Of a stretch of 64,000 nt of DNA, positions 52,478 to 64,000 are shown piece after piece. The translations under genes and the position numbers were made by a program. This DNA is from Tetramitus jugosus. Taxonomy: Eukaryota; Protista; Heterolobosea. A model generated the notes under the pieces. It saw only the letters and a program-made list of their open reading frames with translations. It made no database searches and had not been told where the DNA came from. Within the stretch, counting starts at the first letter, position 1, and each line of letters begins with the position of its first letter. Location of the stretch: NCBI GenBank assembly GCA_937625935.1, contig OW569351.1:558001-622000 (forward strand), given 5' to 3'.

Positions 52478-52506
52478 GGGTGTGATTCAGTTTTGTTTTT
52501 TTTTAA

Positions 52507-52518
52507 GGATGTAGTTCG
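52507..52518 (+). repeat. Left terminal inverted repeat
   Basis: GGATGTAGTTCG, preceded by TTAA (52503-52506). Confidence 0.88.
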
Positions 52519-52599
52519 TTGGACCTCAACGTATAAATAGAACTCTACCTATAAATTTTTTTGGGCACGACACCCAATCACAAACACAAACTTACGATC

Positions 52600-52770
52600 A
52601 TGGTTGCCACATCTCATCAATGGTTCTGTTCCGGCTGTGGTTCCGTCTCAGCCAAGAGTATTATAATGAATACTGCCTCATGGTTCTGCCCAGGATGCGG
52701 TCAAGTACTGGTTGATTCAACAAGCAATCAAAACAGGCACAAAAAATTTCCTTTGCAATTTGCACGGTAA
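52600..52770 (+). CDS. 56-aa putative zinc-ribbon mini-protein inside the element
   Basis: Duplicated WFCSGCG/WFCPGCG motifs; TATAAA boxes and a C/A-rich leader lie upstream. Confidence 0.4.
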   Translation: MVATSHQWFCSGCGSVSAKSIIMNTASWFCPGCGQVLVDSTSNQNRHKKFPLQFAR

Positions 52771-53037
52771 GCCTGACTTGCAAACGGCCAAACAGTGTGA
52801 GTACAAATTGTCCATATAAGACCTTATTGTTGATAGATTATTGACTATCGAAGATCGAAAATCCCGACACGTCAATACCAAATTCAACACATCTTCTACA
52901 CCAAGGAACGAACCAACTAGATACACAAATAAATCAATATGTATATCGGTTATTCTTACTTTTCTTTTGACTCCAAACTTTACCAATTGTTGGTGTTGGT
53001 TATGTCTTCTTTTGGCGCCTTTTCCTTGTTTTCCCAT
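52717..53037 (-). pseudogene. F-box-like ORF or fragment carried by the element
   Basis: ITDIHIDLFVYLVGSFLGVEDVLNLVLTCRDFR follows a basic N-terminus; no substrate-binding domain follows. Confidence 0.5.
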
Positions 53038-53109
53038 TTGTTCATTGATTTTTTTCATCACTTGCAAAAAACAGAAAACAAATACTCTGAAGGACATCGT
53101 GAATGCGAG

Positions 53110-53823
53110 TGACCTGATGATGAGTATGAGTTTTCTGATGTTTGTCAAATTCTGTCCTACTATTGATACCATTAGAGAGGTGTTGAATTGTCCGATAACT
53201 TGAGTATTCAGATCTCATTGATGACACTTGCTCTTCAAACATATCCTGATAACACTGACTATGTCAACAAGATTATTAATAACATTGCTAGTCAATTGAA
53301 TAGCACTGCACTTGCTTCAGATGAAATTGTAGAGATGTTGAAGCGATTGTTGTTGGTGCCACTCGAGTCATACAACAATGTGCTAACAGTTTTGAAGTTG
53401 GAGAAGTATGGTGATATTATTCATTCTCTTGGATATGAACAGAGAAAGTTTATTGCACTGAGCATTGTGAGATGCGCACTTGACAATGGACACAAGATTT
53501 CAACATTTGAACAAGTGAACAAACTGTTTGATTTGATTCGTCCACTGTTGAAGGATGAGGAAGACCAAACAACATTCTCACCTTCTGACGACTCACCAAT
53601 AGCTGCAACATTGCTCGAAGATTTCGAAGAAGAACAGAACTTGATTGCCAGATTGGTTCATTTGTTTGATAATAGCGATACTGATCAATTGTTTAAAGTT
53701 TTGGCCGCAGCCAGAAAGCACTTTGGTCAGGGTGGTGTCAAGAGAATTCAATACACATTGGTACCGCTTGTATTCTCCTACTTGAAACTTGCTCAGAGAA
53801 TCTACAATGCACACTGCAAATAG
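53110..53823 (+). pseudogene. VPS35: Captured internal fragment of retromer subunit VPS35
   Basis: SIQISLMTLALQTYPD..DYVNKI, LLVPLESY, EDFEEEQNLIARLVH and ARKHFGQGGVKRIQYTL are VPS35 hallmarks. Truncated at both ends; frameshifted near 53175. Confidence 0.85.
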
Positions 53824-53845
53824 ACACCTCTTGTCGACTCTCCAT

Positions 53846-54179
53846 CTTTTTTGATTGATTTGGTTGTTGTTGTTGTTGTTGATGTTCGTTGTGCGACTTG
53901 TGTTTTTCGTTGTTGTTGTTGTCGTGTCAGAGAGAAAGTTTTTCGTTGTCTTTCGTTTGGTTCAAGATTGGATAGATAGGTGGATATATTATAAAAAAAT
54001 ACAATAAATGTTGTATCAGTTTCCTCTAAGCTGCGGAATTGGTGCAGTTGTAAAAATTTCCGTTGAGACTGTCTTTACAACGACAACGGCCATCTACCTC
54101 GGTTTAAAAAGCGCTGTCTTTTTCGCTGTTTGATTCAACTCACACAACAAACACAACACACAACAAATACAATAACATT
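53846..54179. promoter_or_regulatory. Candidate bidirectional promoter upstream of Fanzor
   Basis: TATA-like TATTATAAAA near 53990, flanked by C/A-rich leaders ending in ATG on both strands (54180 on +, 53845 on -). Confidence 0.4.
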
Positions 54180-56093
54180 ATGCCACGAGGCGTGCCTAAG
54201 GACGGCAAGAGAAAGAGAAAGAGAGAGACTGTCAAAAAGAATGAATACTCATCACATTACGTGGTCAAGGTCGGTCTGAAGTCTCTGTTGTTGCATCATC
54301 CAACTCTGTTACCAATCATACAGACTCAAGCTCTGGAGATTACAAGGATTGCTCTTCGACTCACAAGATTTATAAACATATTCGTTTTGAGGCACTTGGA
54401 GTCTGACTATCAAATCCCTTTATTAGATCAAGTGTTTCTTCAAAGATTAGGTTCTGTGTTGTTTGGACGCAATTCAAAACCAAGAGACAATAACTTAAGT
54501 CTCATCAACGAGTCTGTCAACATGGACGATGTAGTAGTCAAACTCAGAAAGATTTATCAGAGTTTTGCCACGTCCATCAATTATGTTGCCAGGTCTCTCA
54601 ATGTCAACATCTCCAACATGCTCAAGTTCACATTGGAACCAAGACTGAGGAAGTATCTGAGGGTCAGAATGAATCAACTACACAGTGACTCATCTATTCC
54701 AAAGTCAGAACAAAGAAGGGTTGTTGAATACATTATCAGAAGGTTGACATTTAGCACTCCTGTCCACGATTTTATCAAATTGCCTCCAAAAGAGTTGATA
54801 GAGACGATTCCTGTGTTGATCCGAGAGGTTCGAACACTTGTTGATGCTAAAACTGATGAAGTAATTGATGAATCATTTGTGAAGAACAACACCAATAACA
54901 TGCTGAAGTTTTACTGGCATGTTCAACAATTTCTGATCAACAATGATATGAAATCGTTTGCACTACTTCCTTTGTCTCATTTCAAGTGCAGGTGTATGGA
55001 GATTGGCACAAAGGAATTAGTTGATATGCTTAAACAGAAGAAACAAGGAAGACAAAAGAAGGGCGAGGAGTCAACTGAATTGAAGTGTAATCTCAAGTGT
55101 TTGAATGTTGGAACAAAGAAGATTCAAATCGACTCTATCAGAACTGACGGTATTCAGGCCTCTGTTGTTCTCAGACATCAACTCATTGGCAATCACAAGA
55201 ACAATAAGGCAAAGGAATCCAAGGGCCAGAAAGAAGCAAAGAAGAGAAAGAAAGAAACAAGTATGAACGAAGGTGCTGAATATTTGGTTGGGATTGACCC
55301 GGGTATTGTTACGTTGGTGAGTTGTGCAGATTCAGATGGCAAGAAGTGGGAGTTTTCTAACAAAACATATAGACATCTGTCCCACCATTCAAAAAACTCC
55401 AAGCGATTGCTGAAATACAAAGCAGAATGGAACGAAATGAATGAGAAGAACTTGGATGAACTCCAAAACTCAATCAAACAGGCCGGTGTACCAACAAGTG
55501 GTCTGTTCCTTGAACACATCAATTCTGTGTTGAAAGTCGAGGATGATTTGTTGAATTTTTATTGCACCCCAAAGGTGAAGAGACTGAATTGGGATAGCTA
55601 TATAATGAGAGATAAGACGATTGCCAATGTTATGAATGACTTTCGAAAGAGAGCAAATGGAAGAAGCATGTTAATTGGGATGGGCAATGCTGGTTTTGGT
55701 CATTGTTACAAAGGACATGCTCCAACACCAAAAGGAAAGCTATTGAAAAAGTTGAATGAGCACTTCAAAGTGAAAATGATCGACGAGTTCATGACAAGTC
55801 AGAAATGTCATCATTGCCATTCTCACATGAAGCCAGTCAAGCATAAGAGAATAGACAAGAATGGAACGTTGAATGTCTCTGTCGTCCGAGGAGTTAAACA
55901 GTGTGCAACCACTAAATGTTTAGTGACTCACAACAGAGACATCAATGCGGCCAAGAACATGCTCCATCTACTGAGAACAGAAATGGATGGACAGTCACGT
56001 CCCGATGCCTTCAAGAGGAAGAAAAAGGTCGCAAAAGAATTAATCAAAATGGTGGAACACCTCCAAGGCTCACTCCATCAAGCTGCTATGTAA
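54180..56093 (+). CDS. Fanzor: Fanzor (Fanzor1-type) TnpB-like RNA-guided endonuclease
   Basis: RuvC-I VGIDPG (D373), RuvC-II IDEFMTSQKC (E536), Zn finger CHHC..CATTKC and RuvC-III NRDINAAKNM (D587); RTDG motif; NLS-like KRKRKR; 637 aa, intronless. Confidence 0.93.
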   Translation: MPRGVPKDGKRKRKRETVKKNEYSSHYVVKVGLKSLLLHHPTLLPIIQTQALEITRIALRLTRFINIFVLRHLESDYQIPLLDQVFLQRLGSVLFGRNSKPRDNNLSLINESVNMDDVVVKLRKIYQSFATSINYVARSLNVNISNMLKFTLEPRLRKYLRVRMNQLHSDSSIPKSEQRRVVEYIIRRLTFSTPVHDFIKLPPKELIETIPVLIREVRTLVDAKTDEVIDESFVKNNTNNMLKFYWHVQQFLINNDMKSFALLPLSHFKCRCMEIGTKELVDMLKQKKQGRQKKGEESTELKCNLKCLNVGTKKIQIDSIRTDGIQASVVLRHQLIGNHKNNKAKESKGQKEAKKRKKETSMNEGAEYLVGIDPGIVTLVSCADSDGKKWEFSNKTYRHLSHHSKNSKRLLKYKAEWNEMNEKNLDELQNSIKQAGVPTSGLFLEHINSVLKVEDDLLNFYCTPKVKRLNWDSYIMRDKTIANVMNDFRKRANGRSMLIGMGNAGFGHCYKGHAPTPKGKLLKKLNEHFKVKMIDEFMTSQKCHHCHSHMKPVKHKRIDKNGTLNVSVVRGVKQCATTKCLVTHNRDINAAKNMLHLLRTEMDGQSRPDAFKRKKKVAKELIKMVEHLQGSLHQAAM

Positions 56094-56200
56094 GTCCCGA
56101 TTATGTAGGAGCGTTAAGGTGTCTTCTCGGGAAATCATAATTTTTTTATTATGGGTTTTATTTCACCGAACTACATCCTTAAGGTGTGATGTGTTCATTT
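56094..56200 (+). ncRNA. Candidate Fanzor omegaRNA (scaffold through right TIR, plus flank-derived guide)
   Basis: Lies between the Fanzor stop and the right end. Stems TCCCGA/TCGGGA and CATAAT/ATTATG; ATGTAG can pair with CTACAT in the TIR. Boundaries are inferred. Confidence 0.65.
56167..56178 (-). repeat. Right terminal inverted repeat
   Basis: CGAACTACATCC, followed by TTAA (56179-56182). Confidence 0.88.
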
Positions 56201-56268
56201 TATCGGCTTTGTAGCCAACCAGTGGTCAAAAAGCGGAACAACAGGAAACATTCACGAGTTCGATCATT

Positions 56269-56748
56269 GTGGATGCAAGGAGGTTAGTGATCAAGTGGCT
56301 ACTTGACAGTTGCTTTGAATTGTCTGTTCCGTGTCTAAAGAGCACAAAATCAGAGCATGACGAGGATGGTAGTGAGGATGGTGAGGAGGAGAATCATCGT
56401 GGAGATGCCTTCCCATCGAAAAAGCAAAAAAGAAGTGAAGAGATTGAGTTTGCCAGTGGTCCTGATGCGTTGCAAGTGATTGGTGAGATGGAACGTGACA
56501 TGTTTTGTCAAAATTTACTCGCCTTGTTGAAATTGTCAGTGTCGGATCAATTGAGTACCAATACGTTTGTTATCGATGGTGTAAATCAGATTCAGATGCT
56601 TCAAGTGGGAGAAACGAAACAAGAAGAAACATTCAACTCGGACGAGTCGTTGTTTGCGGTTTTCCTGGAGCTTTGGCACTGCATTTCTTTTCACAATCTT
56701 AGCTCATGGCTAGTGGAAAGGAACTCTGGTGATTGTTGTGAATCATAA
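56269..56748 (+). pseudogene. Unidentified ORF, probably a gene fragment
   Basis: 159-aa ORF with protein-like composition but no clear ATG start. Confidence 0.3.
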
Positions 56749-56783: not shown

Positions 56784-57851
56784 TCACTCAGCAGCTCTAT
56801 TTACTATTAGTAGATCAGAAGCACCATCTCCACCTCCACCCCACCCAAATTTTTGAGTAATATCGGACAAGGGTGTTCTCTCTTTTGAAGGTTGTACAGT
56901 CGACCTTCTAATCTCTTTGTTAATATTCTGAAGATGCTTCCATGCATCACTCATGTACATTCTCTGACGCCAATCAGTAATCATACAGCCTCCAATTATC
57001 GCTTTTAGGTGATTGAAGCAAGGAGCATATTCTTCACCAAAAACTGAACTAAAGGTTTCGTATGCCTCATTCATGTATTTGGATATCATACTATGGCACT
57101 TTTGGTTTTCGATAGTGTTTGTGACAGGCTGAATGAAGCATTCATCCCCTGTCAACATCAATTTTAGATAATGGGCAAATAAAACACCAATCGAAAAGAT
57201 ATCCATGGCTGTATTGATAAGAAAATCGTCCCCACATACAAATGGTCGTGTTCTTCCAATAGTACCCGTTATTGAATGAGTCAATGAGTAGCTGCAATTC
57301 ATATCGATAATAACAGCATCATGCAATTCAAAGTCATTTTCCACAACTATGTTCGATTTTCTGAACATGACGTTCCAAATCGATAGGTCACCATGAATAA
57401 TAGTCTTCCTATGCAATTCCTTTACACCTTTCATTATTCCAATCATTAGGTGACAAAGGATTTTCAATTTAGATCCCCCTGAAAGTTTTTGAATCTTACT
57501 GTAACTCAAATATTGGTCAAAGGGTACAAGTGTTTCTGTAACTGTTAAGTAGCACATTTTCCAGTATTTCACTTGTATTTCACTCTCCATTTTAGTTTTC
57601 CACTCAATAGGTGCCTTATTCACTCGTTCATGTTTCAAAATTTGAACCAAATTCATATGTTTCGGCACTTCACTCATTACTTTCTCTTCATCAACTGTTC
57701 CAATTGAAAGTTTCACAAACACTGGATATTGTGTTGATTGTGATTTTTGAGAGATAAAAGCAAAGCATTTGCTATTGTGCATCAACTCTCTGTTAATCGT
57801 AAATCCTAGCTCCAGTACAATCTCTGCCATTGATGAACAGTAATTCGTCAT
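56784..57851 (-). CDS. Divergent protein kinase domain (probably the 3' half of the upstream gene)
   Basis: VFVK, IIHGDLSIWNVMF, IIDMN (at the DFG position) and DIFSIG. Confidence 0.8.
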   Translation of the reverse strand: MTNYCSSMAEIVLELGFTINRELMHNSKCFAFISQKSQSTQYPVFVKLSIGTVDEEKVMSEVPKHMNLVQILKHERVNKAPIEWKTKMESEIQVKYWKMCYLTVTETLVPFDQYLSYSKIQKLSGGSKLKILCHLMIGIMKGVKELHRKTIIHGDLSIWNVMFRKSNIVVENDFELHDAVIIDMNCSYSLTHSITGTIGRTRPFVCGDDFLINTAMDIFSIGVLFAHYLKLMLTGDECFIQPVTNTIENQKCHSMISKYMNEAYETFSSVFGEEYAPCFNHLKAIIGGCMITDWRQRMYMSDAWKHLQNINKEIRRSTVQPSKERTPLSDITQKFGWGGGGDGASDLLIVNRAAE

Positions 57852-57913
57852 GAGATTTCTTGAGGAGCTTGAGGACGATGTAGAACCCCTATCTCTTTGC
57901 CCTTATATCCCTT
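57827..57913. repeat. Direct repeat copy 1 (~88 bp)
   Basis: CCATTGATGAACA.TAATTCGTCATGAGATTTCTTGAGGAGC...CCCTTATATCCCTT recurs at 59094-59183. Confidence 0.9.
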
Positions 57914-59033
57914 GTTGTTACGACTGGAAGAATTATCTTTGTTGTTCTTTCGTTGACGATAGTCATTGTTGTCATTTTCATCATTATTTTCATTATTGTT
58001 GTCATCACTATCATCATTATTGAGGTAATCCTGCTTGTTGTACGTTAATTCAAATCTTTTTTCAAAGATTCCGTGCCTAAGAGTTCCTTTTCTAACATGA
58101 CAGCCATACTGGTCTCTCCAAATGAGATCAACTTCACAATTTCTTGCTCCCGAGAGAATATGCAATTGACTGTCTTGTTGGATAAAACCTAGAGAGCGTT
58201 TCGCTATTACTAGGGAAGTCAATAATCTATCTTGCAACTGTTGACTCATTTCCTCAGTTGTCATATCGACATCTAGTTGTCTCATAATTCTATGAACATT
58301 CGAAAATATCTTCATATCAATTTCTGGTAACTCTACACAGCATTTTTTGAGAGCAGCACCACAAGCGAACATGTCGGTCACTATTTCACACTTTACAACA
58401 GATGTGGTAAGCTTCAGTTTTTTGGGTGTTTCTTGGATGAGTGTCTCTTCTTTTTTCTTTGGTTCCGGTGTTCTTGGGATCAAATCATCTGATGATCGCT
58501 CGGATGTTTCCTCTTGTTTCTTGAGAGGTGTATCATCATACTTAATCAACCAAGAATTTAGAAATTGTTCTAATGGTTGTGGCAAGGCAGGAATGTCAGC
58601 ATTATGAACGACAACATCATTCTTGTGTTTCCCCCAAATTGGTTTGTTCAGTCGAAATTGCAGTTCAGCTGCCAAACCTCTTATCAATTCCACTTCATCA
58701 GAAAGTGTTCCTTGTGTCTCTAGCTTTTTAGTTACTTGGTTAATCTTTCTTAACAGCCTGGAGACCTCCTCGCTGTTGATCGTCCCACTTGATGAAACAT
58801 GTTCTTGGATCCTATTGTTGATGTACTCTTCTTCATCTTCACTGCCACCACTGGGCTGATAATTTTGGTCCTTCGAATCATCTGCTGGTTCTTCCTCTCT
58901 TTCATCTTCAGTCTTGTTCTTCTTGTTTGGATGACCTGAAGTACGTATTAGATGGCAGAGCACAGAGAAAAAAAACTGAACAATTCATACCATTTGCTTC
59001 AGCATCACGAACCCTCTTTCCATTCCTCAGCAT
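57848..59033 (-). CDS. Unknown protein, N-terminal partner of the kinase ORF; intron 58936-58990
   Basis: MLRNGKRVRDAEAN-G-HPNKK joined by a GTATGA..TTCAG intron; its stop overlaps the kinase ATG (ATGA). Confidence 0.6.
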
Positions 59034-59093: not shown

Positions 59094-59183
59094 CCATTGA
59101 TGAACAATAATTCGTCATGAGATTTCTTGAGGAGCTTGAGGACGATGTAGAACCCCATCTCTCTCTTTGCCCTTATATCCCTT
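59094..59183. repeat. Direct repeat copy 2
   Basis: Near-identical to 57827-57913, with a small indel in the CT tract. Confidence 0.9.
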
Positions 59184-59189
59184 CTTTCT

Positions 59190-59819
59190 TTGAAGGCTGG
59201 TCATGCACAACGGCCTTCTAGCATGGAGGACGAATCCATTTGTCAACAAGAGTTCTTGGATGATTCCAGACTTGAATGGCCAACCATTCCATGGATTAGG
59301 ATTATGGGATGTTCCGCCGGAGTATTGCGATTACAACAAAATTCAGTCACTTCAAAATCCACCCACAGCTGAAGCGTCAAAAGTACCCGTTGTTCGTTGT
59401 ATAGTTTGTAGAGTTCTTCAATGGTTGTTGCATGAACAGTGAATCCTTGAGATTATTTTGATACAACCGCTTGTTCTTAAGGTGGCGGTTTGACTCGGCC
59501 AAGAAGACTCTCGTCGTATTTAAACCTTAAGTGATTGTCATGGGAAAATGCTCTTTCTTACGACAAGAAGCAAGATAATTTCAAAATTGCTGCTAGAGTT
59601 CTGAAACTTATACACTCTTTACAAACCATTGTAGAAAGCTTCTTGGTCCAACATACCTACAGTCCCAAACCTAAGAGAGCTAAGAGGACTACAGAATCTG
59701 AGGAAGAGGGTGAGAATTTCCAACAATTGTGTTTTTCATTACTTTATCGGCTCACTACCTTCCATAGATCTTTGCCTTATCGTGTTGAAAGCCTTTCACA
59801 AAGACTAACGTCGCTGTGA
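59190..59819 (+). pseudogene. Degenerate coding remnants
   Basis: Successive short protein-like ORFs broken by stops and frameshifts. Confidence 0.3.
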
Positions 59820-60843: not shown

Positions 60844-61234
60844 TTGATTTTAGTATAAAAAAATAAAGATGTCACTTTTGGCTTATGAAAGAAGTAACTC
60901 ATCTCCTTCATTTACCAGAGCTGTTTCGTACATACACTGTTAATGTTGACTATTCGAATCAGAACATTCCCAAAGCATCGCACCATCTCCTGACGCTCCA
61001 ACGACGTTCTTAGATGCAAACCAATTTGAAACTCGATCTACACTAGGATCATGAATACGTATCGGGTGGCATACGCAGTTGGAATCACAACTACTGAAGT
61101 TCAACCGAACGTATTCAATGAACCGATTCTACCGAATACACAAGAACAAAAAGTCATTCCAATATTCAACTAAATCGGGGCAATTATCATGTTCGCCAAG
61201 TCGTGTTATTTTCTAGGCTTTTGCCCGCCGCCCG

Positions 61235-63382
61235 ATGCATCCTTTTTCAAAAGGACAAGAGATGAGCAATTATCAAACCGGTCATCAGTCTTGGAACATT
61301 ATTAATCAGCCACTTAAGAATCCGAACAATGGATTCCAGCTCGGACCTTCAGATAAAGAAGTTGTCACACCTGCCGTTGTTGTTAAAGACAAAAGAATGG
61401 TGGCTAAGAAGATGCAGGAAGCCAATTGGGAACCAATACTTTTTAAGGATGGTGCTACCTCTCTCTCAGTCCATAGTATTGATTCTGTTGATGATCTTGA
61501 TTTTTCTGCTGTTTCTTCTTCGAAGATCCGTTCGAAGACCAGTTCCAAATCGAAGAAACGTGGGACAAAATCGCATCGTGTTCTGTTGGATCAATTGAGA
61601 ATCGAAGACAGTCTTCCAGTCGACCAAACCAAAATGGACGAAAGCATGTCGTATGTAGAATTGGGTGTCGAGAGGGGTGACACGTTGGAACATGTTTATG
61701 ATGAGCATATGAGAGTGGGAAACTACGCATATGATATCATTGTCCCTCATCATATTCTTGAGCCATTTCGACAGTTTGTACCCGCAGAATTGCAACCGGA
61801 GTATAGATACAATATATTTTCTCAAGAAAAGGAGCTGAAGACGCACTATGCCTACTTGGGCTGCCATGGAACTGGCACAGGCATTCACTGGGACATCTTT
61901 TCCTCCATTGGAATCAATCAAATGGTAGGTATCTACTACCCGGACAAGAAAGCAGATGTCTGTATCATCGGTTCCAAGGATAAAGATATCAAGGCTCAAA
62001 AAGACTCGATGTATGCTATATGGGTGTTTGGGGCTCCCCAACACCGTGAGGCTCTTCTCTCAAAGGTCCACAACTTGGCTACTGGTAAGAGATTCCTGCA
62101 TTGGAGAAAGATATCAGATCTGGGATTGCCTTGTGTTTTTTTGAAGCAAAGTATTGGTGATATCGTCATCATACCTCCTGGTTGGTTGCATCAGGTTTCC
62201 AACGTCAGTCATGACATGGATAAGGATGAGCGAGCCTGCTTAAAGATAGCATGGAACGTACTGCATGTCAAGGATTTACCACTTACAAATGCAGAGTACG
62301 AAGTCCATCGAGCATATCACAGGGATACTACCTATGTGGTCCGCGCGTCTGCGTTTAGGTGTCTTTCTAATTTGCTAAACATGCATAAGCATAGTGATAA
62401 GGATAAGGAAGTCGTTCGAACGCTTTACAGTACCTTATCGCACTGGTTTGATGAGATAAGGCTTGATATTGATGTCATTCCCAGTTTGACACCAAACAAG
62501 GATTGTCTCACCTCCTATATGTGCTCTAGATGTGCCACTGATTTATTTGTCTTTGGATTCAACTGTTCTAGTTGTTACTCATTTCTCATTTGCCACAAGT
62601 GTGTCCTGATGAATGATACTTTGTGTCATCCTGAGAATTACAAGGTAGTTAGAACGAACGATGTAGCATTCGAGGACGTCGACAAAACTCTGTCCAAAGC
62701 TCGAAGTCATCTGGAACAGTGGAATATTCAAATTGAACCAAATGAAGTCCCAAAGTTCACTTGTGCCATGGCTCTTCAAAAGATTGAATATGAAAGAAGC
62801 AAGATGATGCTCCAGAAATTTCAACAATTGCTATTGAACGATAACGAACTGAAAGGCAAGTTGAAGAAATGTCACTTTTTTGAAGATGAAGAAAATGGCC
62901 TGGTTATCAGAGAGCTCACTCAACTGGAACTAATAATTGAAGCAACAAAGGTCGAACAACATTACCTCTGGAAATTCAACTCTCGAAACATCTTACGTTT
63001 CGCAATCAAGGCCATAACTCCCGAGGATGTGATAGTGTTGAATATTCATCAAAACTTTCTATCCGATAATCACAAAGTCCAGATGGAGATTCTTTTGGGT
63101 CCAATGAAACCGTTGGTGTCAATATTGAATTTATTGAATGATAAACCTGAGGATGATCGAGAAGGTGCCATCATTGCTCTGACCGGCATTTTGCAATCAA
63201 TCACGGATATAGGAAACAAGGCAATTAAGAGCAAAGGAGATGTACAAGAACCACCAAGAAAGAAACAAAGACTTCCAGCTGAAGGCTTCTGTTTGTCAAT
63301 TGGAAAGCTGGTTCGAGTATGTGATAGTATTGATCAATGGTACTACCACAACGAACAAAAGAATATTATTTTCATGATTTAA
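61235..63382 (+). CDS. JmjC-domain protein with Cys-rich zinc finger
   Basis: YLG..GTGTGIHWD (HxD), QSIGDIVIIPPGWLHQVSN, LKIAWN, then CSRC..CSSC..CHKC. Confidence 0.85.
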   Translation: MHPFSKGQEMSNYQTGHQSWNIINQPLKNPNNGFQLGPSDKEVVTPAVVVKDKRMVAKKMQEANWEPILFKDGATSLSVHSIDSVDDLDFSAVSSSKIRSKTSSKSKKRGTKSHRVLLDQLRIEDSLPVDQTKMDESMSYVELGVERGDTLEHVYDEHMRVGNYAYDIIVPHHILEPFRQFVPAELQPEYRYNIFSQEKELKTHYAYLGCHGTGTGIHWDIFSSIGINQMVGIYYPDKKADVCIIGSKDKDIKAQKDSMYAIWVFGAPQHREALLSKVHNLATGKRFLHWRKISDLGLPCVFLKQSIGDIVIIPPGWLHQVSNVSHDMDKDERACLKIAWNVLHVKDLPLTNAEYEVHRAYHRDTTYVVRASAFRCLSNLLNMHKHSDKDKEVVRTLYSTLSHWFDEIRLDIDVIPSLTPNKDCLTSYMCSRCATDLFVFGFNCSSCYSFLICHKCVLMNDTLCHPENYKVVRTNDVAFEDVDKTLSKARSHLEQWNIQIEPNEVPKFTCAMALQKIEYERSKMMLQKFQQLLLNDNELKGKLKKCHFFEDEENGLVIRELTQLELIIEATKVEQHYLWKFNSRNILRFAIKAITPEDVIVLNIHQNFLSDNHKVQMEILLGPMKPLVSILNLLNDKPEDDREGAIIALTGILQSITDIGNKAIKSKGDVQEPPRKKQRLPAEGFCLSIGKLVRVCDSIDQWYYHNEQKNIIFMI

Positions 63383-63779
63383 TACAAGCAGAAGATAGAC
63401 AGAGAGGGTACCGACTACATTGTAGATAATAAAGAGGTTTGAAAGTTGCCATACCTAGAAATTCATTTGCGGTATCTTCACTCCTTGATCCTATCCCTCG
63501 AACAGAGATACGTTTATCATCTCAAACATAGATGGAAGTGCAACTACGGACGATATTGAACCAGGATACGTTTGTGATAGCAAACGTCTGTGAGTTCACA
63601 ACTACGGTTGTTCAACTTTCCAACATGGACAAAACAGACAATGACAAGTTGATTTCAAACAAATAACTAAAGAAATAAAATGAATCCCTGTAGTGACATC
63701 ATCCTCTATTTATTCGACCAGTATATCGACACGCGTCAATACTTTTTCCATACAACCATGACTGGATTGAAGTGCTACA

Positions 63780-64000
63780 CACCAATCACGATTCCTGTTG
63801 GTCGCACTAATAAGGGCAATCCCCTCAGTCAAGGTCAAGAAGAATATAATGCCAAACAGAGAAGTGCGAGAGCTCGACCTATTTTTCGGTTGTAAAACCA
63901 AAATCCCGCGCCACCTTCGGGGAAATTAAAACAAAGTTGAAGAGTTTCACCACAGCATGGGCTGAAAGTGAACACCAACAAGATTACCTGTTTTCCATTG
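63780..64000 (+). pseudogene. Broken C-terminus of a DDE_Tnp_4 (IS5/Harbinger/ISL2EU-like) transposase
   Basis: PLSQGQEEYNAKQRSARAR, then after a frameshifting insert TFGEIKTKLKSFTTAW; this fits the YN..R..vE..FG.lK signature. Confidence 0.55.

Follow-up and report, generated by a model that had tools for sequence, protein, structure and literature searches.

A Fanzor1 nuclease gene on a Kolobok-type transposon of Tetramitus jugosus, and scars that may record its homing

Homing is an established role of the bacterial nucleases TnpB and IscB; in the literature searched, it has been demonstrated for no Fanzor. For Fanzor1, the catalytic residues of SpuFz1 are published (D383, E541 and D606), and SpuFz1 and GtFz1 cut about 14–21 nt past the TAM. 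A DPG motif in RuvC-I has been defined as a Fanzor fingerprint, and Fanzor1 scaffolds take in the terminal inverted repeat (TIR) and the target-site duplication (TSD) (PMC10711439). Bao and Jurka (2013) described in Chlamydomonas 5'-truncated Fanzor1 Helitrons with duplications of 7–19 bp after TTTT, in 10–70% of the copies versus 1/200 of the Fanzor-less ones. They named the pattern “one-ended transposition” and left its cause open, in a work that predates the RNA-guided activity (PMC3627910); in the literature searched, nothing later links this term with Fanzor. Kolobok transposons are defined by a TTAA duplication, 5'-RR…YY-3' termini and a DDE transposase with C/DxxH (PMC9587614).

The window, i.e. 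the whole stretch of 64,000 nt analyzed, comes from Tetramitus jugosus, whose genome is described as 26.3 Mb in 55 scaffolds plus the mitochondrion, with a second haplotype deposited (PMC11106597). The assembly searched here holds 26.35 Mb in 56 contigs, the longest of about 0.7 Mb. The Fanzor gene sits in a 3,680-bp TIR element (52503–56182) that reads TTAA, GG…CC, TTAA (Table 1). Its TIRs are of type A; a second type, B, exists in the genome. The neighbours in the window are eukaryotic by Pfam (SET/MYND, RCC1, VPS35). The captured VPS35 piece (678 bp) is 99% identical to one host locus, and no source was found for the 151-aa F-box-like cargo ORF.

Table 1. Coordinates of the Fanzor element and of its right flank in the window
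Feature	Position	Strand	Basis or remark
Left TTAA target-site duplication (predicted TAM)	52503..52506		
Left terminal inverted repeat, 12 bp, begins GG, type A	52507..52518	+	same end on transposase element L060
Left subterminal DNA from Kolobok parent	52519..52660	+	75% to L060
Cargo ORF, 151 aa, weak F-box-like	52717..53172	-	Pfam E 0.04; Atlas F-box cluster 0.93
Captured VPS35 fragment (ORF 53188-53823)	53136..53813	+	PF03635 E 1.4e-44; 99% to C22:83229-83909
Fanzor cassette 5' part, in type A and B elements; putative promoter/5' UTR	54016..54179	+	function inferred
Fanzor1 ORF, 637 aa	54180..56093	+	
Candidate omega-RNA core, long hairpin	56114..56182	+	folding; upstream hairpins 56050-56112 overlap ORF end
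Right terminal inverted repeat, ends CC	56167..56178	-	
Right TTAA duplication, predicted scaffold last bases	56179..56182		role by analogy with PMC10711439
Predicted guide, first ~15 nt beyond the element	56183..56197	+	length by analogy
Filler-like DNA past right end	56218..56704		99% C34:323531-323917, then 100% C1:675069-675170

The ORF starts at the first ATG downstream of an in-frame stop at 54105 and runs uninterrupted. A sequence-only reading of this DNA had called it intronless; no intron has to be assumed, and contigs of run X3 span nearly the whole ORF free of gaps. The TIR transposon around the gene and the many copies were not part of that reading. The three RuvC acidic residues also stand where that reading had placed them: D373 (codon 55296–55298) lies within a DPG motif, E536 is encoded at 55785–55787 and D587 at 55938–55940, and they align with D383, E541 and D606 of SpuFz1 (counted with a fusion offset of 394). 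The glycine described at the canonical RuvC-II place is G502 of LIGMGNAG (residues 498–505), and the Glu, displaced downstream as claimed, shows the alternative spacing E536-x6-C543. The zinc finger is present as a C4 finger (C543-x2-C546 ... C575-x4-C580), followed by R586-D587 of RuvC-III, with a match to the TnpB/Cas12f zinc-finger domain PF07282 (E 7e-10). Across 107 aligned relatives D373 and G502 are invariant, and conservation is 90% or higher at E536, at D587 and at each zinc-finger Cys; the three acidic residues are retained in every intact copy and in relatives. As for the basic patches announced at both ends of the protein, basic runs are indeed found, but there are three of them rather than two (residues 10–15, 354–358 and 612–616), NLS-like by sequence only.

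The rearranged RuvC had been taken as the Fanzor signature. The arrangement is there, but it is common to Fanzor1, Fanzor2 and some TnpBs and is therefore insufficient alone for an assignment to Fanzor1; the fold decides. A PDB sequence search gave SpuFz1 as the sole significant match (E 1.9e-13). The AlphaFold model built from 107 sequences, the structure prediction that had been proposed as a check, reached a pLDDT of 90.5. Its seven best Foldseek matches are all Fanzor1 (SpuFz1, PpFz1 and GtFz1; E 9e-25 to 5e-17, TM 0.62–0.70), followed by Cas12f (E 5e-7) and Fanzor2 (E 1e-4), the TM being 0.21 for ApmFz2 and 0.23–0.25 for TnpB. The features of Fanzor2/IS607, i.e. a serine recombinase partner, a GG target, no TSD and about 500 aa, do not describe this locus, which has TIRs, TTAA duplications and a poor fold match to Fanzor2. 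From the sequence match to SpuFz1, the DPG motif with the alternative Glu, and the fold, the ORF product is an intact Fanzor1, the class that had been proposed. Its 637 aa also agree with the size of Fanzor1, roughly 600–700 aa with an enlarged REC/RuvC. Its relatives form a small clade (54–97% identical), everything outside this clade being about 22–35% identical. The protein itself is a new member of a known family; the novelty is in the pairing with a Kolobok host and in the scars described below.

The element has the TTAA duplication of Koloboks (an internal anchor located 24 right ends, of which 23 terminate in CCTTAA; TTAA also at left ends) and GG…CC termini, in type A as in type B. The DDE transposase with C/DxxH is not within the window element and was found on an element with the same ends. 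Contig C47 carries a lone type A right end behind a gene remnant, the homologue of which led to contig L060 of another assembly. L060 contains a 2,373-bp Fanzor-less element, both ends of which are as in type A, with a frame for a 571-aa DDE transposase bearing one frameshift near its C-terminus. The first Asp (D250) lies in D-x-R-W-S-Q-R-R-N and the second (D334/D336) in H-D-Q-D; D-P-G-H (355–358), H-W-V-G-D-H and Glu 533 follow. By eye these motifs agree with the Trichomonas Kolobok_1/_2 rows (supplement of PMC9587614). The PF20700 match of this transposase (E 0.0013) is below the cut-off, and a PF20700 profile search of the genome, which gave no match, is uninformative because the positive control was silent too. 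In this assembly only 3' remnants of the transposase were found and no intact gene, nor was a partner transposase with type B ends found. The Fanzor element, with its cargo, has the ends of a Kolobok, and its partner is of the Kolobok1 type. The pairing of Fanzor with Kolobok was not found in the literature searched, in which the one source that mentions both names other superfamilies as Fanzor hosts.

Other classifications of the host were considered. piggyBac (YY/CC 5' termini and a DDE_Tnp_1_7 transposase) was rejected, the termini being GG and the L060 transposase having no PF13843 match. piggyBac-type frames of 580–970 aa occur elsewhere in the genome (C34:198515, C18:150749, C30:266267, C18:38735 and C39:393561). 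A TA duplication with AGG…CCT ends corresponds to the same letters as TTAA with GG…CC; it is disfavoured by the invariant flanking T and A and by the Kolobok-like partner.

The last 69 nt of the element fold (z -3.1) into one long hairpin in which an internal UUAAGG is paired with the terminal CCUUAA. Type B, a 42%-identical copy on C32 and two relatives from metagenomes close their hairpins in this way too, with compensating changes among elements in the inner stem; over the five divergent elements z is -2.2 to -6.5. Fanzor-less ends have no such terminal hairpin (z -1.0 and +1.1). By analogy with the published scaffolds, a candidate omega-RNA would come from the right end, TIR and TSD included. 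We infer such an omega-RNA, a TTAA TAM and cleavage by the protein, all of which are very probable. In the assembly no second TTAA + guide site was found for the window copy. The window also contains, at 59477–59530, a 54-bp unit TTAA GG…CC TTAA, the minus strand of which includes the terminal 9 bases of a type B right end. It folds weakly (z -1.4) and could be a mini element, a ghost omega-RNA or a repair footprint.

In an RNA run and in X3, contig depth over the cargo is far above that of the Fanzor ORF or of the neighbours, and Fanzor ORF contigs are shallow in the one RNA run recorded. Cargo positions 53028–53791 are ~80–200x deeper than single-copy neighbours in X10 and X3 contigs, versus ~17x in the DNA run X5. 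This deep region may reflect strong transcription, perhaps in antisense to VPS35. In run X10, a joint between 53060 and 56059 appears to be another strain's short Fanzor-less derivative that keeps the omega-RNA region (a ghost element).

In the genome 66 matches were found; 17 copies carry an intact ORF with the native end, and 2 an altered tail. The variants are 99, 95, 91, 83, 81 and 65% identical, and dN/dS stays at 0.12–0.20 at all divergence levels; the protein is therefore under purifying selection. Together with the guide-matched scars described below, this lends indirect support to the earlier reading of the nuclease as probably active. On the Fanzor protein tree (a quick tree, used for the TIR label only) the TIR type switches at least 3 times, and in one copy the ORF DNA is 59–76% identical, yet the cargo and the 3' end are 97–100% identical. 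The copies are therefore mosaics. Element letters were left unread for about a dozen copies (C8:461k, C10, C24:126k, C25, C27, C35, C39, C43, C52 and the left parts of B' copies). The 42%-identical Fanzor of C32:2809–4988 (L041) is frameshifted; its type A element, close to the end of a contig, is a minimal one of 2.2 kb. The nearest relatives (62–75%) are on three metagenome contigs (L051, L052 and L053; JGI 3300042923) that are gene-dense, intron-free and resemble a protist giant virus. Type B ends are present on L052, while L051 and L053 have neither ends nor hairpin. A viral contig collection held no relative of the Fanzor or of the transposase piece, and a search of metagenome contigs returned three short contigs and no new element ends.

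The element ends that stand unpaired are strongly biased, i.e. about 16 right ends versus 2–3 left ends. Eight left-truncated copies have a readable junction, and five of them keep a TTAA no more than 25 nt away from it (~5% expected by chance for each; p about 2e-5). Three of these copies, at C2:615330–619186, at C3:518529–522567 and on C48, begin with TTAA and a stretch of their own right flank (lengths among the three: 9, 12 and 9 bases), giving the order left flank, TTAA, guide bases, left-truncated element, TTAA, guide. The order is observed; its cause is discussed below. The five other junctions have TTAA+1 at most, or none. As a control, TTAA plus at least 7 bases of any of 29 guides was sought on both strands of about 280 kb: it occurs only three times, and each hit marks the left junction of the very copy whose guide it matches. 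One scar is joined via a 3-nt microhomology, another runs on into 75 bp matching C13. When the left and right flanks of the scar copies are rejoined they give a plausible native host sequence. In the single assembly examined, no full-length donor was seen at the three sites.

On its left the C2 scar adjoins a native gene with an open frame of 591 codons. Three B' elements (C8:128805, C22:243474 and C26:154382) carry as cargo ~190 bp of this left flank together with the TTAA and the seed, with one mismatch. The mismatch is at guide position 3, so that the captured scar would be shielded from the guide of the C2 copy. The simplest order, in this one case, is that the C2 scar formed first and was later captured by repair copying through the truncated copy into the flank. 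The DNA behind the C3 and C2 scars had been considered as random filler, which was rejected since it is mostly B' element cargo; the capture pattern stands.

We consider it probable, by a fair margin over an even chance, that these observations reflect an active Fanzor1 on a non-autonomous Kolobok1-type transposon, which homes by an RNA-guided cut of the empty allele. A transposase acting in trans, as suggested by the ends shared with L060, would move the element to TTAA sites. An omega-RNA of ~70–140 nt from the right end would finish with the duplicated TTAA and extend into ~15 nt of flank, i.e. the guide. The target of the RNP, TTAA + guide, would then be present only at the empty allele, and the cut would fall about 14–21 nt past the TAM, as judged from SpuFz1 and GtFz1. 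With the filled sister or homologue as repair template the element would be copied back. The free TAM-distal end would invade first, so copying would begin at the right end, and aborted copying would leave the left flank, TTAA, 9 to 12 nt of guide, the left-truncated element, TTAA and the guide. Template switching during repair would shuffle Fanzor variants between the two TIR types and capture host DNA as cargo. Plain excision followed by gap repair cannot put right-flank bases on the left side, whereas a break in a restored empty site can, provided that it lies at least 9–12 bases beyond TTAA. Also in favour of homing, the scars (9–12) stay short of the reported Fanzor cut positions. Against it, excision by a DDE transposase already leaves a break, and this weakens the need for a homing nuclease (PMC13565253). 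Further points against are that just three scars are diagnostic while the five other junctions have TTAA+1 at most, that no full-length donor was seen in the assembly examined, that no intact transposase was found there, and that the Fanzor ORF contigs are shallow in the recorded RNA run. On the letters of the junctions, homing is nonetheless the cause we favour for the scars, with odds somewhat better than even, and they may be the first genomic trace of the natural role of Fanzor. The wider proposal, that Fanzor1 is a eukaryotic RNA-guided homing nuclease the cuts of which are recorded as TAM + guide-seed duplications while aborted repair yields truncation, TIR swaps and host-gene capture, is only slightly favoured over its negation.

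The insertion site was compared between samples. Other samples are without the element at this site, and copies are polymorphic between strains. One empty allele of another strain has TTCA in place of TTAA and differences inside the would-be protospacer. This fits a resistant allele, as expected under homing, shared ancestry being an alternative. Beginning 35 nt past the right end, a stretch of about 490 bp is 99–100% identical to two distant loci. It may be repair filler; the neighbourhood is repeat-rich, and the C1 piece may have been copied in either direction. Further right the window contains a divergent kinase gene (56784–57851) with paralogues near contig ends (C40, C24 and C18) and a C-terminus unlike that of the other strain's allele. 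A 63-bp and a 28-bp duplication (57827–57916 / 59094–59186) flank the ORF after the kinase gene. A 721-aa open frame (61217–63379) lies amid repeat debris; it matches JmjC weakly (E 6e-5) and is rich in Cys over part of its length. The frameshifted piece at 63760–64000, without Pfam match, resembles by eye the end of a Harbinger/DDE_Tnp_4 transposase, with five more copies at 83–86%.

Among other explanations the most serious, although we think it unlikely, is a one-ended Kolobok insertion: the right end would be joined at TTAA, and repair would extend the left target by 13–16 nt and join it to a degraded left end, the Fanzor being active or a passenger. The duplications do start exactly at TTAA, the target of the transposase, no donor allele is required, and this is the published reading of the Chlamydomonas cases (PMC3627910). 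But Helitron2 and a DDE/TIR element, which have only Fanzor1 in common, both show this signature, and it is found in just 1/200 of Fanzor-less Helitron copies. Moreover the lengths of the duplications (7–19; 9–12) end near the Fanzor cut positions, and purifying selection on the nuclease is left unexplained. That the nuclease is kept for another use, i.e. to cut incoming giant viruses or competing elements, or to work for the host, is much less probable still. It would suit the virus-like, gene-dense contigs of the nearest relatives, and the conservation of the Fanzor though no intact transposase was found in the assembly. Against it, the guides are each copy's own host flank (29 different ones), with no fixed guide and no single orthologous locus, and the copies are strain-polymorphic. 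We give slightly less credit again to a Fanzor that binds DNA via its guide without cutting, as a regulator or transposition helper, although a Chlamydomonas Fanzor1 formed an RNP with no in vitro cleavage (PMC10530073). The three acidic residues are kept in all intact copies and in relatives. Least credible of all is retroposition of transcripts by a LINE in trans as the origin of the left-truncated copies: 5' truncation with variable duplications, here of 13–16 bp, is typical of target-primed reverse transcription, but there is no poly(A), the 3' end is exactly on the TIR, every duplication begins with TTAA, and the copies take in cargo that lies in antisense orientation ahead of the Fanzor promoter.

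The interest of this locus is in the host element and the scars rather than in the protein alone. Kolobok is added to the transposon superfamilies that carry Fanzor1, and homing with aborted repair suggests a possible route for the origin of Pack-type cargo. The compact nucleases form a distant clade, for which a TTAA TAM and a scaffold of roughly 70 nt are predicted and which offers several natural variants (65–99% identical). The family is young and polymorphic, and its host is a free-living amoeba that can be cultured and for which a second haplotype has been deposited, so that homing can be tested by sequence comparison alone.

SpuFz1, from the Spu-1 elements of Spizellomyces punctatus (PMC10432273), is the best match in sequence and structure (TM 0.70, 19% identity) and has the same D-E-D triad. 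Like the family described here, Spu-1 forms many near-identical copies between inverted repeats, with no internal transposase and a short 3' region for the omega-RNA. Spu-1 however has TA/CATA and 30-nt repeats, whereas the window element has TTAA, 12-bp GG…CC ends, host-gene cargo and a partner transposase that can be named. GtFz1 of Guillardia theta shares the Fanzor1 fold (TM 0.62), and its TAM, TTAAN, is the one predicted here; it differs by an N at the third catalytic position, D587 in the window Fanzor, and by the lack of evident inverted repeats. The Kolobok1 lineage (Kolobok_1/2_TV; PMC9587614) has the TTAA duplication, the RR…YY termini and the DxxH DDE transposase seen on L060, but its recorded accessory genes are KolX, exonucleases, RecQ and a His-Me nuclease, and no Fanzor. 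The restorative homing of TnpB and IscB (PMC13565253), i.e. a cut of the empty site and repair from the filled copy, is what is proposed here; that source lists homing experiments for prokaryotic TnpB and IscB only, and for Fanzor nuclease activity only. The Helitron2-Fanzor1 elements CRe-1, 2 and 3 of Chlamydomonas, together with MCi-2, have the same 3'-biased, 5'-truncated copies, with duplications of 7–19 bp that begin directly behind the target tetranucleotide, and additional captured DNA on the 5' side (PMC3627910). Their host is a rolling-circle or unclassified element, in contrast to the DDE/TIR host of the window Fanzor. If homing is the true reading, it would also account for the “one-ended transposition” of the Chlamydomonas Fanzor elements.
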